DNA from: Phaeosaccion multiseriatum
Lineage: Eukaryota; Protista; Ochrophyta, other classes
Assembly (NCBI GenBank): GCA_965112735.1
Contig: OZ218954.1
Location: 496,001-560,000 of the forward strand
DNA: 64,000 nucleotides
Direction: 5' to 3'
Shown: positions 1-29,799 of the stretch, piece by piece
How positions within the stretch are numbered: the stretch's first letter is position 1
How the letters are laid out: every line of letters starts with the position of its first letter
Notes under the pieces: generated by a model
The model's database searches: none
Told to the model about the DNA's origin: nothing
Seen by the model: the letters and a program-made list of their open reading frames with translations, nothing else
Made by a program: the position numbers and the translations under genes

Positions 1-629
1 CCGCCCTCGTGTCCGTCAACGACCAGACCGAAGACGAACACGTCAAGGCTCTCATCCCAGATATCAACAACGCCCATGTCTGGGTTAGCTTCGAGCGGGA
101 AGCAGGCACCACCCGCAGCACAACAGCGTTCAAGTGGGCAGACGGCACGGCGACGGCGGAGAACACGATGGCGGACGATGAATGGGGCTGGAAGACCAAC
201 CAGCCGAACAGTAGGGGCAACGACCAGCTCTGCGGCTCGTATTACTTCGGAGGCGGCCTGGAGCCCGGCTGGAGCGATGTTCCCTGCAGCGACCCTGGCC
301 CTGTGGCTGGCTTCGTCTGCGAGCGAGGCATAGGTGCGTAAGGTAGTGGCCTGAAGAGGGCTTGGTTGGAAGTGGCGGTACCACACTATTGCGCGCGCGT
401 TGCTTAAAGGGGAAACGCCCTCTTCATCCTCTTCCACCTCGCCTCTCCTTCTTCATGTTGTAGGTTGTTCACGATCATCACCACCTCCTCCTAGTCCACC
501 ATCTCTTGCTCTACAGCCCCCCCCCCCCCCCTCTTCCCCGCTTGAAGGGAAAGCGCCTTTTCCTCCTCATCCCCGCTCCTGCTCTTCCTCCACCTCCACC
601 ACCTCCTCCTCCTCCTCCTCCTCCTCCTC

Positions 630-15965: not shown

Positions 15966-23560
<7,595 letters not shown>

Positions 23561-23767
23561 CCTGTTGATCCCGAGGGGGACGATCCCGATAAGGGTCTTC
23601 CCGAGGGGCCCGGGGATGCGGGTCGCCCCCCCGAGTTGTCGTGGAGGGGGAATTACGTCTCGTGGAATGGGAAAAAGGTTCAAACTCCACAATGTCAATT
23701 GGTACTCCAAAAATGTCAAATGGCGACGTTGCCCAAAAAAAATTGTTTTTTTTTGTGAAGGCCGTAC

Positions 23768-23897
23768 CTTGTCTTCGGGGCACGTTGGCGAAGTTCCCGT
23801 ACAGTGCTCCTTCACATCAGTACCACAGCAACTCTCCCTGCATGCCTTCGTGCTCGGTTCAAAGATTCGGGGCAGTCAGCTGAAGTTCCATCACCAA
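23768..23897 (-). pseudogene. Frameshifted fragment of a disintegrin-like repeat exon
   Basis: GDGTSADCPE-(frameshift)-FEPSTKACRESCCGTDVKEHCTGTSPTCPEDK|gtacgg matches disintegrin-type spacing F.P....CR.....D..E.CTG.S..CP.D. Confidence 0.55.
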
Positions 23898-24051
23898 GGC
23901 ACATGAGCTTCTACCGACAACACCAAAAGTTTGTTGGGTTTTGGTCATTGGGGGTCGGTAGAAGCAGCATGCGCAGCTTCACATCTCTCTCGTTCCAGGC
24001 TTGAGGTGGATTTCTGCGTTAGGAAGAGATACACAACGGACAGAAAGAACG

Positions 24052-27000
24052 ATGGGCTTCATTTGTCCGGCAGGAGGAGGAGGACGAGGAGGAGGAGCGG
24101 GAAGTGTTTGTGGAGATGGTGCTGCCTTTCCACGCTCGCGGGGACCATGGGCCTCTGCCCCCTCCACTTCTCCACCCGTGCACCCTCCTGAGGGAAAACA
24201 GAGCCAAGGGCCTGTTCAGCGGCGCTCGGTGCCCCAGTTTGGAACCAGCGGTGGTCTCAATGCAGGAGGGCCGTATCAGGGACGAGGCGGTGGCAACCGC
24301 GTCCGAGGACGGCAAATAGCGCTGACCAAAGAGATCAAGAGAGTTGGGAGCAGGGGCGACTGGCGAGGGGTGGCCCGATTGCTCGGGGGGGCGAAAGAAG
24401 AGGGGGTGCAAATGAACATCATTATCTTTAGCGCCGCCATTTCTGCGGTGGGTAAGGCTGGGAGATGGAAGGGCGCGCTTGCCCTGCTCGATGAGACGAA
24501 GACAAGCGGCCTCCAACCCGATGTCATCTTGTACAGCTCTGTGATTTCAGCTTGTGCCAGGGCAGGAGAGCACGAGAAGGCGGTGGACTTGTTGAGGGAG
24601 ATGCGCAAGGAAGGCCTTCAACCCGATGTCATCTCGTACAGCTCTGCTATTACTGCCTGTGCCAAGGCAGGAGAGCACGAGAAGGCGCTTGACTTGTTGA
24701 GGGAGATACGGACGGAAGGGCTTCAACCCAATGTCATCTCGTACAGCTCTGCGATTTCTGCTTGTGCCAAGGCAGCTGAGCACGAGAAGGCGCTAGAGTT
24801 GCTCGACGAGATGCGCAGGGAAGGCCTTCAACCCGATGGCATCACCTATAGCTCTGCGATTTCTGCTTGTGCCAAGGCAGGAGAGCACGAGAAGGCGCTG
24901 GACTTGCTGAAGGAGATGCGCAGGGAAGGAATTCCTCCCGACGTCATCATGTACAACTCCGCCATGACTGCTTGTGGAAATGCAGGAGAGCATGAGAAGG
25001 CGCTTGACTTGCTGGAAGAGATGCGGAGGGAGGGGCTGCAGCTCGATGAAATCTCCTTCAATTCTGCGATTGATGCCTGTGCCAAGGCAGGAGAGTACGA
25101 GAAGGCGCTGGACTTGCTGAGGGACATGCGGAGGGAAGGCCTTCAACCCAATGAAATCTCGTACAGCTCTGCGATTTCTGCTTGTGGCAAGGCAGGACAG
25201 TACCAAAAGGCGCTTGACTTGCTGGAGGAGATGCGGAGGGAGGGCCCTCCGCCTAATGAAATCTCGTACAGCTCTGCGATTACGGCGTGTGGGAACGCAG
25301 GAGAGCACGAAAAGGCGGTGGACTTGCTGGAGGAGATGCGGGGGGGAGGGCTTCAACCCAATGTCTTCACGTACAGCTCTGCCATTTCGGCTTGTGGCAA
25401 GGCAGGGCAGTACGAGAAGGCGCTGGACTTGCTGCAGGAGCTGCGGAGGGAAGGTCTTCCTCCCGACGTGATTACGTACAGCTCTGCGATTTCGGCTTGT
25501 GCCAAGGCAGGGGAGCAGGAGAAGGCGCTCGGTTTGCTGGAGGAGATGCGAAGGGAAGGCCTTCAGCCCAATGAAGTGTCGTACAGTGCGGCGATTTCGG
25601 CCTGTGCCAATGGAGGAGAGCACGAGAAGGCGCTTGGCTTGCTGGAGGGGATGCGGAGGGAAGGTATCGTCCCCAATGAAGTGTCGTACAACTCTGCGAT
25701 TACGGCGTGTGGGAATGCAGGAGAGTACGAGAGGGCGCTGGCCTTGTTGAAGGAGATGCGCAGGGAAGGCCTTCAACCCGATGTCATTTCGTACAGCTCT
25801 GCGATTTCTGCTTGTGCCAAGGCAGGAGAGCATGAGACGGCCCTCGAATTGCTGGAGGAGATGCGGAGAGAAGGGATTCATCCCGATGTCATCGCGTACA
25901 GCTCTGCCATTTCGGCTTGTGGCAAGGCAGGGCAGTGCGAGAAGGCGCTAGACTTGCTGAAGGAGATACGGAGGGAAGGGCTTCAACCCAATGTCATCAC
26001 ATACGATTCTGCCATTTCGGCTTGTGGCAAGGCAGGGCAGTACGAGAAGGCGCTGGACTTGCTGGAGGAGATGCGGAGGGACGGGCTTCAACCCAATGAA
26101 TTCGCGTACAACTCTGCGATGGATGCTTGTGGCGAGACTGGGCAGTACGAGAAGGCGCTGGTCTTGCTGCAGGAGATGCGTAGGGAAGGGCTTCAACCCG
26201 ATGTCATCACGTACAGCTTTGCGATTACAGCTTGTGGCAATGCAGGAGAGCACGAGAAGGCGCTGGAGGTGTTGAAGGAGATGCGGAGGCAAGGCCTCCA
26301 ACCCAATGAAGTCTCGTACAACTCTGCGATTTCGGCGTGTGCCAAGGCAGGAGAGCACGAAAAGGCCCTTGCGTTGCTGCAGGACATGAGAGAGGAGGGT
26401 ATTGAACCGAATGAAATCTCATACAACTCTGCGATTGCTGCTTGTGGCAAGGCAGGAGAGCGGAACAGTGCGCTGGACTTACTAAAGGAGATGCGCAGGG
26501 AAGGTCTTGCACCCAATGAAATCTCCTACAACTCTGCGATTTCAGCGTGTGCCAAGGCAGGAGAGTACGAACAGGCGCTGGAGTTGCTGGAGGAGATGCG
26601 GAGGGAAGGTATCGAGCCCGATGAAATCTCGTACAACTCTGCGATTTGTGCGCTTGACAAGACCGGAAGAGCATACGAGAAGGCGCTGTACTTGTTGAAG
26701 GAGAGGCAGGAGCAAGACCTTCCATCCAGTGCCATCCGGTACAACTGTGCCATGACTGCTTGTGCCCAGGCCGGAGAGTACGAAAAGGCGCTGGACTTGT
26801 TGGAGGAGATGCGGAGGGAAGGGCTTGAACCCGATGTCATGACGTACAACTGTGCGATAGATGCATGTGCCAATTCGTGGCAGTATGTCAAGGCGCTGGA
26901 CATGCTGGAGGAGATGCACAGGGAAGGCCTTGAACCCAATGCCATGTCCTACAAGTCTGCAGTGGAGGCATGTAGCGAGGCGGGGGCGTACGACAAGGTA

Positions 27001-27129
27001 CTTGACTTGTTGAAGGACATGTTCAGACAAGGCCTTGAAGCTGACGTCACTTCACACAGCACGGCCATTGTGACGTATGCGAGGGCACGAAAGCGAGCGC
27101 GAGGGTCACTGACACGTACTGAGTACTGA
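24052..27129 (+). CDS. P-class pentatricopeptide repeat protein with 26 tandem 35-aa repeats (24313-27045) and no C-terminal E/DYW/SMR domain
   Basis: Uninterrupted ORF; consensus VISYSSAISACAKAGEHEKALDLLEEMRREGLQPN/D with 105-bp period. First ATG is at 24052, but an in-frame acceptor (ttccag|GC at 23998) could add upstream exons. Confidence 0.95.
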   Translation: MGFICPAGGGGRGGGAGSVCGDGAAFPRSRGPWASAPSTSPPVHPPEGKQSQGPVQRRSVPQFGTSGGLNAGGPYQGRGGGNRVRGRQIALTKEIKRVGSRGDWRGVARLLGGAKEEGVQMNIIIFSAAISAVGKAGRWKGALALLDETKTSGLQPDVILYSSVISACARAGEHEKAVDLLREMRKEGLQPDVISYSSAITACAKAGEHEKALDLLREIRTEGLQPNVISYSSAISACAKAAEHEKALELLDEMRREGLQPDGITYSSAISACAKAGEHEKALDLLKEMRREGIPPDVIMYNSAMTACGNAGEHEKALDLLEEMRREGLQLDEISFNSAIDACAKAGEYEKALDLLRDMRREGLQPNEISYSSAISACGKAGQYQKALDLLEEMRREGPPPNEISYSSAITACGNAGEHEKAVDLLEEMRGGGLQPNVFTYSSAISACGKAGQYEKALDLLQELRREGLPPDVITYSSAISACAKAGEQEKALGLLEEMRREGLQPNEVSYSAAISACANGGEHEKALGLLEGMRREGIVPNEVSYNSAITACGNAGEYERALALLKEMRREGLQPDVISYSSAISACAKAGEHETALELLEEMRREGIHPDVIAYSSAISACGKAGQCEKALDLLKEIRREGLQPNVITYDSAISACGKAGQYEKALDLLEEMRRDGLQPNEFAYNSAMDACGETGQYEKALVLLQEMRREGLQPDVITYSFAITACGNAGEHEKALEVLKEMRRQGLQPNEVSYNSAISACAKAGEHEKALALLQDMREEGIEPNEISYNSAIAACGKAGERNSALDLLKEMRREGLAPNEISYNSAISACAKAGEYEQALELLEEMRREGIEPDEISYNSAICALDKTGRAYEKALYLLKERQEQDLPSSAIRYNCAMTACAQAGEYEKALDLLEEMRREGLEPDVMTYNCAIDACANSWQYVKALDMLEEMHREGLEPNAMSYKSAVEACSEAGAYDKVLDLLKDMFRQGLEADVTSHSTAIVTYARARKRARGSLTRTEY

Positions 27130-27297: not shown

Positions 27298-29799
27298 TCA
27301 AAATTGCACCAGCAGCCCCTCAAAGCCTGTATGGCAGGGCTGAAGCAGGGCCTCCACCTCTTGGTCGTCATCGTCCTTGCCATCGCTACCTCCGGCGCTC
27401 CTCATTGCCACACATAGCTCCTCCCCTCCCCCTCCTCCTCCTCCTCCTCCGTCCGTCACCATTGACAGTCTCTCCCCGCTCAATGACCACACTCTCGCCC
27501 CTCTCTTGCTGCAATCGCCCAGTGAGAGACCCGACGTGCCGGACGTGAACGATTCACTTTCACTCTCACCCTCCCCACCCTTTCCCCCGTCGTCCTCACC
27601 CTCCTTGCTGCCGGATCTGTTGGCAGATTTGCTCGGCTTGGCAGTGAGGCATTGTCTCTTTCCCTTTCCCTTTCCCTTGCTGTCCACAGCACTAGCACTC
27701 GCACTGCGGTAGGCCTTAAAGAGCGAGAATTGCCCCCCGTTCTCCAGGCTCATTAGTTCAATCCCCCAGCGGAGGTCAGGATCGTGCCTGGGGGTGGGTG
27801 GATGGATGGGTGGTGGGTGCGTAAGCGAGTTGAGTGAGTGCGTGCGTGAGTGAGTGCGTAAGTGAGTTGAGTAGGATAGGGAGAGAGGGAGAGAGGGCGA
27901 GATGGTGAGTGACTGAGTGAGTGAGTGGGTAAGTGAGTGAGTGGGTAAGTGAGTGCGTGAGTGAGAGAGTGAGTGGGTGAGTGAGTGAGTGGGTGGGTGA
28001 GTGCGTGAGTGCGTGAGTGCGTGAGTGAGTGCGTGAGTGAGTGGGTGAGTGAGTGAGTGAGTGAGTAAGTAAGTGAGTGAGTGAGTGAGTGAGTGAGTGG
28101 GTGAGTGAGTGGGCGAGTGCGTGAGTGCGTGAGTGAGTGCGTGAGTGCGTGAGTGAGTGGGTGAAGTGGGTGAGTGAGTGAGTGAGTAAGTGAGTGAGTG
28201 AGTGAGTGAGTGAGTGAGTAAGTGGGTGAGTGAGTGAGTGGGTGAGTGAATGAGTGAGTGAGTGAGTGCGTGAGTGAGTAAGTGCGTTAGTGAGTGAGTG
28301 AGTGGGTGAGTGAGTATGTGAGTGAGTGAGTGAGTGAGTGAGTGAGTGAGTGAGTGAGTGAGTGAGTGGGTGAGTGAGTGAGTGGGTGGGTGGGTGGGTG
28401 AGTGTGTGAGTGAGTGGGTGAGTGAGTGAGTGAGTGAGTGAGTGAGTGAGTGAGTGAGTATAGCATGTGAGTGAGTGAGTGAGTGAGTATGTGAGTGAGT
28501 GAGTGAGGGAGGGGGTGAGGGGGTGAGTGAGTATGTGAGTGAGTGAGTATGTGAGTGAGTGGGTGAGTGAGTATGTGAGTGAGTGAGTGAGTGAGTGAGT
28601 GGGTGAGTGGGTGAGTGAGTGAGTGAGTGGGTGGGTGAGTGAGTAAGTGAGTGAGTGGATGAGTGAGTGAGTGGGTGAGTAGGTGAGTGAGTGGGTGAGT
28701 GAGTATGTGAGTGAGTGAGTGAGTGAGTGAGTGAGTATGTGAGTGAGTAAGTAAGTGAGTGAGTGAGTGAGTGAGTGAGTGAGTGAGTATGTGAGTGAGT
28801 GAGTGAGTGAGTGAGTGAGTGAGTGAGTGGGTGGGTGAGTGCGTGAGTGAGTGCGTGAGTGAGTGGGTGAAGTGGGTGAGTGAGTGAGTGAGTGAGTAAG
28901 TAAGTGAGTAAGTGAGTGAGTGAGTGAGTGAGTAAGTGGGTGAGTGAGTGAGTGAGTGAGGGAGTGAGTGAGTGGGTGAGTGAGTGGGTGAGTGAGTATG
29001 TGAGTGAGTGAGTGTGAGTGAGTGGGTGAGTGAGTGTGTGAGTGGGTGGGTGAGTGAGTGGGTGAGTGAGTGAGTGAGTGAGTGAGTGAGTGGGTGAGTG
29101 AGTGAGTGAGTGAGTGAGTATGTGAGTGAGTGAGTGAGTGAGTGAGTGAGTGAGTGAGTGAGTGAGTGAGTGAGTGAGTGAGTGAGGCACATGATACAGA
29201 GCAAGACACTAACGAGATGGGATGTGGAGCGACCTCAGGGAACGAAGCACAAGTCAAACTCAAACTCACATGTCGCACGGACGAAACCCTGTCCCGTGAA
29301 AGCACAACCCCTCCGAAGCACCAATGCCTGTGCCAGTTGTGACAAGGACGAAGGGCCCCATATCGTATCGTCTCACAGAGGCGAATCCCGCCACGCAGGG
29401 CTGAGCCACAAGCCCCACCTCGCCCCTGCCAGGTGTCAGGCCAAGCAGCTGCTGGCCGGCGGTAGGGGCGGTAGGAGGTGTCAGGACCACTTGAGCGCAT
29501 CTGTCGCCTCGGGACAGTCGCCCGCCTTCCATCTGAGGGTGTGTGGGTGTCAGGACAGTGGGCAGTGGATGGCAGTGGATGGCAGTGGATGACAGGGGAT
29601 AGCAGTGGATGGCAGGGGATGGCAGGGGATGGGTGTTCGGCCAGAGGGAGGGGGGGGGGGGGGGTGAGAGCTCAGTGAGTGGAGGGGGGCAGGAAGGAGC
29701 CCACACGAACACACACATACACGTGTCTCAGCACACACACGTAGCAACACCGCACACATACACAAACACGCGAAAGGACGTCTCCCCCCCCACACACAC

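Follow-up and report, generated by a model that had tools for sequence, protein, structure and literature searches.

A natural 26-repeat P-class PPR protein in the alga Phaeosaccion multiseriatum, and the Shine-Dalgarno plus AUG word in its decoded RNA preference

Chloroplast P-class PPR proteins such as maize PPR10, CRP1, PGR3 and HCF152, whose sites of action are 5' UTRs and intercistronic regions, are pure repeat arrays without a catalytic domain, and the protein of Phaeosaccion multiseriatum described here resembles them in this respect and in using the same 5/35 recognition code. The algal protein aligns without gaps to the PPR10 structures 4M59 and 4M57, and the action expected from this likeness would be that of a passive clamp affecting the stability and translation of a transcript. 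It differs from the PPR10 type in its 26 near-consensus repeats, its stramenopile origin and its lack of a recognised plastid presequence. Proteins of the PPR10 type leave the ribosome-binding region accessible, their own sites lying upstream of it (bioRxiv 10.1101/2024.02.05.578914), whereas the site decoded from the algal array would cover both a Shine-Dalgarno (SD) sequence and a start codon. A second related system is the restorer-of-fertility type protein PPR-B/Rfo of radish, likewise P-class and likewise a member of a multi-copy, fast-evolving family, for which a steric block of the ribosome on one mRNA has been documented (bioRxiv 10.1101/2021.03.17.435859). PPR-B, however, acts in plant mitochondria, within a coding sequence, where it blocks elongation and no SD sequence is involved, and a block of initiation by the algal protein would be hypothetical. 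The third comparison is with the designer PPR proteins (dPPR, cPPR and sPPR), which are similarly built of near-identical repeats differing mainly at the two code residues; in contrast to these, the algal gene is natural, its repeats share 67-90% DNA identity, its cap repeats are divergent and one of its repeats has 36 residues.

The gene lies on the forward strand at 24052-27129 of the window, by which we mean the whole 64,000-nt stretch of DNA analysed, and consists of one intact open reading frame of 1025 codons followed by a TGA stop codon (27127-27129). The frame is open from 23962, with an in-frame TAG at 23959-61, and the first ATG, at 24052, stands in the context AGAACGATGG, with A at -3 and G at +4. 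The open reading frame and its Pfam PPR matches mark this as a complete, apparently single-exon coding sequence. Read joints that skip whole repeats were considered as products of splicing, an explanation that we rejected, as their sides are 21-30 letters long and they look like assembly-graph overlaps with paralogues. The strongest Pfam matches of the protein are PPR_2 (E=9e-244) and PPR (E=4e-196), accompanied by PPR_3, PPR_1 and PPR_long; only PPR/TPR-type families were matched, with no C-terminal SMR or other catalytic domain among them. A search for an SMR tail encoded in a different frame or in a further exon found nothing, and the downstream open reading frames are of low complexity. 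Variant motifs of the L or S type are absent, as are E/DYW and SMR extensions, and 27 residues follow repeat 26. The gene thus encodes a pure P-class PPR protein of 26 full repeats and a half-repeat cap. Neighbouring open reading frames carry no Pfam domain and offer no functional context, and an HMM built from the repeats of the array detected no other PPR gene within the window. The gene is probably nuclear, and a nuclear, apparently single-exon P-class PPR gene is the best explanation of the locus.

The array starts at 24313 and proceeds in 35-residue steps through 22 repeats of 35 residues, a repeat 23 of 36 residues and three more of 35, ending at 27045; Tandem Repeats Finder places at 24508-26960 a repeat of period 105 in 23.3 copies, with 78% matches and no indels (0%). 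It is preceded by an 87-residue leader (24052-24312) rich in Gly, Pro, Arg and Ser (24 Gly, 11 Pro, 9 Arg), nearly free of acidic residues, with a net charge of +8 and RGG-like motifs, which is disordered as judged by AlphaFold2 (pLDDT <50 for residues 1-78). Repeat 1 (24313-24417) is a divergent N-terminal cap repeat with the code TN, read as A. It shares only 33-47% DNA identity with the other repeats and was missed by an HMM trained on them, yet AlphaFold2 predicts a helix hairpin there with confidence (H80-99 and H104-116, pLDDT about 79-94). Repeats 2-22 (24418-26622), all of 35 residues, were identified by translation and HMM and decode to GGAGGUYAAGAAUGAnUAYYU. The divergent repeat 23 (26623-26730) has an HMM score of 18.6 and the code NS, read as C, and repeats 24-26 (26731-27045) carry ND, NN and KD, giving U, Y and no assigned base. 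At its C-terminus the translation has a half repeat, consisting of a single helix, and then a short tail of basic character (27046-27126).

In the AlphaFold2 model of residues 1-400, paired helices recur every 35 residues with pLDDT >90 from residue 88 on. The best PDB matches of the protein are 5I9G (E=6e-121), 5I9F, 5ORM and 6EEN, RNA-bound designer PPR proteins and PPR10 being closest, and in gap-free alignments to the designer structures 5I9G/5I9F and to maize PPR10 (4M59) positions 5 and 35 coincide with the code positions that these structures define. This agreement with solved PPR proteins validates the repeat register on which the 5/35 reading depends. From repeat 1 to repeat 26 the residue pairs are TN,SD,SD,SN,SD,SD,ND,NN,SN,SN,SD,SN,SN,ND,SD,SN,DN,ND,SN,NN,NN,ND,NS,ND,NN,KD, identical on re-translation to the list given by an earlier reading made from the sequence alone. 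Pairs with an assigned base occur in 24 of the 26 repeats, the exceptions being DN and KD. The code used (TN/SN=A, TD/SD=G, ND=U, NN/NS=C(U)) has the same assignments in Yan et al. 2019 (PMC6468296) and is a land-plant code applied here to a stramenopile. With it the array decodes to AGGAGGUYAAGAAUGAnUAYYUCUYn, and the sequence-only reading was right in recognising an SD sequence and start codon in this string, laid out as in a classical initiation region of bacterial type: a 7-nt core complementary to the 3' end of 16S rRNA, a 5-nt spacer and AUG.

How rare such a word is depends on the null model. When the order of the repeats is shuffled, the null proposed with the original claim, AGGAGGU+5+AUG arises at 2e-6, AGGAGG+4..10+AUG at 9e-5, GGAGG+4..10+AUG at 2.6e-4 and any 4-mer core with AUG at 1e-2. 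Under a stricter null that retains the purine/pyrimidine order of the array, by fixing the order at position 5 and permuting only position 35, the same four patterns arise at 3.9e-4, 1e-3, 3.3e-3 and 3e-2. Among 143 arrays, with 1,607 repeats, decoded in 243 related proteins from other organisms, there was no instance of GGAGG and no instance of a core followed by AUG. A single array would seldom carry this word, but there are many arrays in the genome, and the word itself was picked out post hoc. In the DNA sequencing runs of the organism, paralogous repeat contigs with >=95% identity number in the thousands, and so many arrays offer many chances for the word to appear by coincidence. We consider it more likely that the SD and AUG in the decoded string are a coincidence of a purine-rich code than that a ribosome-binding site is truly read.

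Relatives were sought with the whole protein, with its C-terminal divergent region and by exhaustive HMMER over 1.84 billion representatives. No orthologue was found in protein sets of 5.8 billion and 1.84 billion sequences, the best match, at 53% identity, being similar at the level of repeats only; BLASTP of both ends of the protein against the best hit from Chrysophaeum likewise gave repeat-level similarity. None of the codes of homologues aligned to the decoded array better than shuffled controls. The relatives recovered are repeat-level ones, with no positional orthologue among them in which repeat order could be compared. The repeats give a dN/dS of 0.34 overall and of 0.20 at scaffold columns, with a dS of 0.57, from which it follows that the protein is constrained and that the array is not brand new. 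Judged by these substitution rates, the PPR scaffold is under purifying selection.

On balance, the protein is probably an ordinary passive RNA clamp of the organellar type, in whose decoded preference the SD-AUG word is coincidental. It would wrap a single-stranded RNA of ~25 nt, one base per repeat and with its N-terminus at the 5' end, with (A)GGAGGUYAAGAAUGA-U-AYYUCUY as the predicted preference. The purine-reading N-terminal repeats would seed binding. Once bound, the protein would passively clamp a transcript, most likely an organellar one, and block exonucleases, change the access of ribosomes, or both. Miranda et al. 2018 (PMC5861457) report that contacts at the 5' end, together with purine repeats, dominate PPR binding, and that mismatches are tolerated in long tracts. 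No organelle-targeting signal was recognised in the protein, so that its organellar location is in this scheme assumed from membership of the PPR family.

Another explanation, which we regard as unlikely, is that the protein enters the plastid, or some other compartment whose translation is of bacterial type, where it binds one mRNA from the SD core to about codon 4 and thereby gates initiation or stores the message. The site could then be a start such as that of psaA, or an AUGA in which the stop and start of two cistrons overlap, with the landing site of the 30S subunit occluded; this more specific form we hold to be equally doubtful. The explanation draws on the decoded string itself, in which AGGAGGU, a 5-nt spacer and AUG stand together, rare under shuffles and absent from the 143 decoded arrays of relatives, and on the position of the SD part at the N-terminal, purine-reading end that dominates PPR binding (PMC5861457). 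The block imposed by radish PPR-B on orf138 is a precedent for steric obstruction of ribosomes by a P-class protein (bioRxiv 10.1101/2021.03.17.435859), and the dS of 0.57 between repeats suggests that they have kept their order over some time. The chloroplast PPR activators that have been described, however, attach upstream of the ribosome-binding region, which they release instead of covering (bioRxiv 10.1101/2024.02.05.578914). Further against reading of a ribosome-binding site are the many arrays in the genome, among which one striking word is not very surprising, and the lack of an orthologue with conserved repeat order. Use of SD sites is not known from stramenopile mitochondria. Import into the complex plastid of a stramenopile needs a signal peptide, and the hydropathy of the first 60 residues shows none that is hydrophobic (best 12-residue Kyte-Doolittle mean 0.75), in keeping with the caveat of the sequence-only reading that no clear targeting peptide follows the ATG at 24052. 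The protein as predicted would consequently have no canonical route into the complex plastid.

The search for a target was likewise empty or at most mildly negative for such a role. The exact decoded 25-mer was absent from metagenome contigs, and the 185,579 genomes of prokaryotic species contained it a single time, within a bacterial HAD-hydrolase ORF and in another frame; no prokaryote genome had a perfect decoded site at a start codon. A relaxed pattern with the purines fixed gave 11 metagenome matches, two of them at ordinary bacterial gene starts and none (0/11) on an AT-rich, plastid-like contig, and no match in viral contigs. Across the collections scanned, then, neither a perfect nor a purine-perfect site was found at a plastid-like start, and the decoded pattern was not found within the 64,000-nt window. 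Target-pattern matches in these collections are at chance level. The fit to 'MTIS' on which psaA had been put forward is weak evidence, since, by our rough estimate, so loose a tripeptide pattern should have a chance of tens of percent of fitting one organellar gene or another. In the literature we found nothing directly relevant on SD use in stramenopile organelles or on a natural PPR protein covering a start codon.

It is also improbable, to a similar degree, that the protein is non-organellar, either binding RNA in the cytosol or nucleus or belonging to a fast-turnover family that faces selfish or foreign RNAs, with a decoded word unrelated to initiation. The Gly/Arg-rich leader with its RGG-like motifs and the absence of a recognisable presequence are consistent with such a role, but the leader is also basic, poor in acidic residues and rich in Ser and Pro like many presequences, and the viral contigs held no foreign target. 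Nearly all characterised PPR proteins, moreover, act in mitochondria or plastids. A further reading, in which this copy has no target and is recently amplified, unexpressed or decaying, is very improbable. The five sequencing runs that contain the stretch, none of them recorded as RNA, consist of DNA-like contigs that extend over the gene and the spacer equally, as such a copy would allow, but an uninterrupted frame of 1025 codons, with dN/dS at 0.2-0.34 and a dS between repeats of 0.57, points to long-standing constraint.

Were the ribosome-binding site indeed read, this would be the first natural PPR protein shown to act by covering such a site, and its cap would represent a mode of translational repression or mRNA storage not described for natural PPR proteins. 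It would also give the nucleus a simple means of switching organellar translation in the red-plastid lineage, and would supply a ready-made, readable scaffold for synthetic repression. We know of almost nothing on translation control of this kind in that lineage. As a clean, long, near-consensus natural protein with a readable code, the array is in any case a good test of the land-plant code in stramenopiles.

Duplication of a block was considered as the origin of the repeated AGG in AGGAGG and was rejected, repeats 1-3 being 37%, 58% and 83% identical in DNA to repeats 4-6 and no closer than other pairs. Repeats 3-22 share 67-90% DNA identity among themselves and have codon choices in common, which indicates concerted evolution of the array. 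The best explanation for the gene is that it is one member of a large, near-consensus, concertedly evolving PPR family in this alga, without an SMR tail. Within the array the specificity residues toggle by single-base changes, between S (AGC) and N (AAC) at position 5 and between N (AAT) and D (GAY) at position 35.

The PPR protein is intact and under constraint, a canonical P-class solenoid whose code is readable throughout. It is encoded by the longest ORF of the region by far (window 24001-27129, + strand), with a coding sequence of 1025 codons from ATG 24052 to the TGA at 27127-27129. The frame is open from 23962, preceded by an in-frame TAG at 23959, and its first ATG, at 24052, has strong context (AGAACGATGG). 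Pfam identified PPR_2 (E=9e-244), PPR (4e-196), PPR_3, PPR_1 and PPR_long, but no SMR, DYW or other non-PPR-type domain, in contrast to the PPR-SMR family of the same genome, which carries a C-terminal SMR domain. Every sequence and fold characteristic of the P class was present (Pfam, AlphaFold2, Tandem Repeats Finder, structure alignment), and as such the protein is best filed as an addition to this known kind. Units of 35 residues from 24313 give 26 repeats and a terminal half repeat, with 36 residues in repeat 23, and by Tandem Repeats Finder the array has a period of 105, is free of indels and runs to 23.3 copies at 78% matches. For a ten-repeat segment, gap-free alignments were obtained with maize PPR10 (4M59) and with the designer PPRs 5I9G/5I9F (E=6e-121), whose structures contain bound RNA. 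Tyr4, Lys13-Ala14-Gly15 and Pro34 fall in line with the solved structures, and positions 5 and 35 are therefore the structure-defined code positions; judged from these alignments, the register is correct. On re-cutting, all residue pairs were identical to those of the sequence-only reading, whose code table also agrees with Yan et al. 2019 (PMC6468296), in which TN/SN is A, TD/SD is G, ND is U, NN and NS are C (NN also U), and DN and KD have no base. The array decodes as AGGAGGUYAAGAAUGAnUAYYUCUYn. Repeat 1, the source of the first A, is divergent and is missed by an HMM built from the other repeats; in the AlphaFold2 model, where residues 1-78 are disordered, it forms a confident pair of helices that runs on into the solenoid, and GGAGGU remains in the string without it.

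This string had been taken to spell a Shine-Dalgarno (SD) core, a spacer and AUG, with shuffled repeat order proposed as the null. One million such shuffles showed the combination to be rare, at 2e-6 to 1e-2 per array depending on strictness: 2e-6 for AGGAGGU+5 nt+AUG, 9e-5 for AGGAGG+4-10 nt+AUG, 2.6e-4 for GGAGG+4-10+AUG and 1e-2 for any 4-mer core+4-12+AUG. Because position-5 residues are visibly clustered, with runs of S giving way to an N run C-terminally, a second null kept their order and permuted position 35 alone, giving 3.9e-4, 1e-3 and 3.3e-3 for the first three patterns (with spacers of 5, 4-10 and 4-10) and 3e-2 for a 4-mer core+AUG. Among 143 contiguous arrays of at least 8 repeats (1,607 repeats, from 243 related proteins retrieved), a 4-mer core occurred in two, and GGAGG or a core followed by AUG in none. 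Together these nulls imply that the word is no routine by-product of such proteins. However, in the organism's own DNA runs, contigs of paralogous repeats at >=95% identity number in the thousands; the genome holds a large family of such genes, offering many arrays for a chance word, and the word was recognised post hoc among many possible 'meaningful' ones. Assuming ~100 arrays or more, roughly 0.01-0.3 matches as good as AGGAGG/GGAGG+AUG are expected, which is suggestive, not decisive. Comparison of the repeats at the DNA level ruled out AGG-AGG as a recent three-repeat duplication.

By analogy with its family, the protein would run parallel to the single-stranded RNA that it binds, over ~25 nt, its N-terminal purine-reading repeats would seed binding, and it would act as a passive clamp, protecting an RNA end and/or altering ribosome access. 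We consider it probable that it is an ordinary RNA clamp whose target is unrelated or not known. That it is a true initiation-site reader appears unlikely; such a reader would have a footprint of ~-12 to +13, overlapping the 30S landing site, and would therefore be a repressor or storage factor rather than an activator. Activators of the PPR10/HCF173 kind, in contrast, keep the ribosome-binding region free (bioRxiv 10.1101/2024.02.05.578914). The nearest precedent is radish PPR-B, which blocks ribosomes sterically, but on elongation and in mitochondria (bioRxiv 10.1101/2021.03.17.435859). The decoded ...AAUGA... could also represent an overlapping stop/start junction between cistrons. By rough estimate, the proposed fit to psaA ('MTIS') adds little, since a pattern as loose as M-[TNSI]-[TI]-S can match some organellar gene by chance.

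The strict 25-mer had no match in metagenome contigs and one in 185,579 prokaryotic species genomes (L001, a stretch of a Bacteroidales MAG, 2426-2450, - strand); this match lies inside a HAD-hydrolase ORF, out of frame with it, and was dismissed as chance. As purine-reading repeats tolerate mismatches least and pyrimidine codes are ambiguous (PMC5861457, PMC6468296), a relaxed pattern with purines fixed and pyrimidines degenerate was also scanned. It had no match in viral contigs and 11 in metagenome contigs, against ~15 expected (a rough figure that uses the information content and assumes a size for the collection). Seven of the 11 read ATG, two, on contigs with 53% and 64% G+C, coincide with plausible starts of bacterial genes, and none is in an AT-rich plastid-like contig. 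The window itself has no match to the decoded site within three mismatches. These scans are low-power, because long PPR tracts tolerate mismatches (PMC5861457) and the collections scanned are not known to include organelle genomes of the alga itself. The initiation-site interpretation is neither supported nor refuted, and we lean towards coincidence.

A non-organellar or conflict-type role is similarly doubtful. The 87-residue leader is rich in Gly (24 residues), Pro (11), Arg (9) and Ser (8), carries a net charge of +8 and includes RGG-like motifs. Over 12 residues its hydropathy mean reaches 0.75 at best, so it has no signal peptide. In an alga whose plastid is complex, this lack speaks against plastid import, provided that ATG 24052 is the true start. 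An acceptor-like ttccag follows a pyrimidine run at 23993-23998, inside the open frame and 54 nt upstream of ATG 24052; it is possibly an intron boundary with an upstream exon, and an ORF scan of the region revealed no evident upstream ORF with a signal peptide. No RNA run contained the PPR stretch; it occurs in five runs, which consist of DNA-like contigs and belong to two studies.

It is very improbable that the gene is a non-functional copy. Between repeats, mean dS is 0.57 and dN/dS is 0.34 (0.20 at scaffold columns), which indicates a protein under constraint and an array that is not brand new. Repeats 3-22 and 24 have 67-90% DNA identity and the same codon at most positions (e.g. TGT 22/22, AAT 12/12, TCT 17/18), and so evolve in concert. 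A change of one base switches a code residue (AGC/AAC at position 5, AAT/GAY at position 35), which amounts to a two-bit system for A, G, U or Y. Across window 24418-27045 the code covaries with the residue that follows each repeat, E coming after N35 in 8/13 repeats and after D35 in 2/12 (Fisher p = 0.04); E1 accompanies N5 and V1 accompanies S5, a pattern suggesting two repeat 'cassette' types.

The best protein matches, PPRs from Chrysophaeum taylorii, dinoflagellates, brown algae and metagenomes, reach 50-53% identity along part of the length, in keeping with the genome of a stramenopile alga, and exhaustive HMMER against 1.84 billion representatives found nothing above 53%. A search with the divergent C-terminal repeats alone gave many staggered alignments, as did BLASTP of the two ends with the top match, indicating repeat-level likeness rather than positional orthology. 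Aligned to the codes of the homologues, the decoded string did no better than its shuffled versions (best score 6.5; mean of the shuffled maxima 6.2).

The window holds no second PPR gene (HMM of repeats), and the adjoining ORFs have no Pfam match. In three runs of one sample, contig joints in window 24540-26430 jump whole repeat numbers at single-copy-like depth, e.g. from 25025 to 25134, a net skip of one repeat. Their sides of 21-30 letters point to overlaps with paralogues in the assembly graph, though an allele shorter by one repeat is possible. Contigs of the DNA runs end at 24066-24106, at 27416-27458 and at a CT-rich low-complexity tract immediately upstream of the gene (23100-23430). 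Diverged copies of window 23431-23870, also upstream, seem to exist elsewhere in the genome; same-sample contigs match it, then depart from it at 23768 and 23866 and continue as dissimilar sequence. Downstream DNA is of low complexity and includes a 1.36-kb (TGAG)n microsatellite (window 27831-29186, 339 copies, 83% matches), which gives rise to long spurious 'SLTH' ORFs (minus strand) and, at 28-30 kb, to a spike in GC skew.
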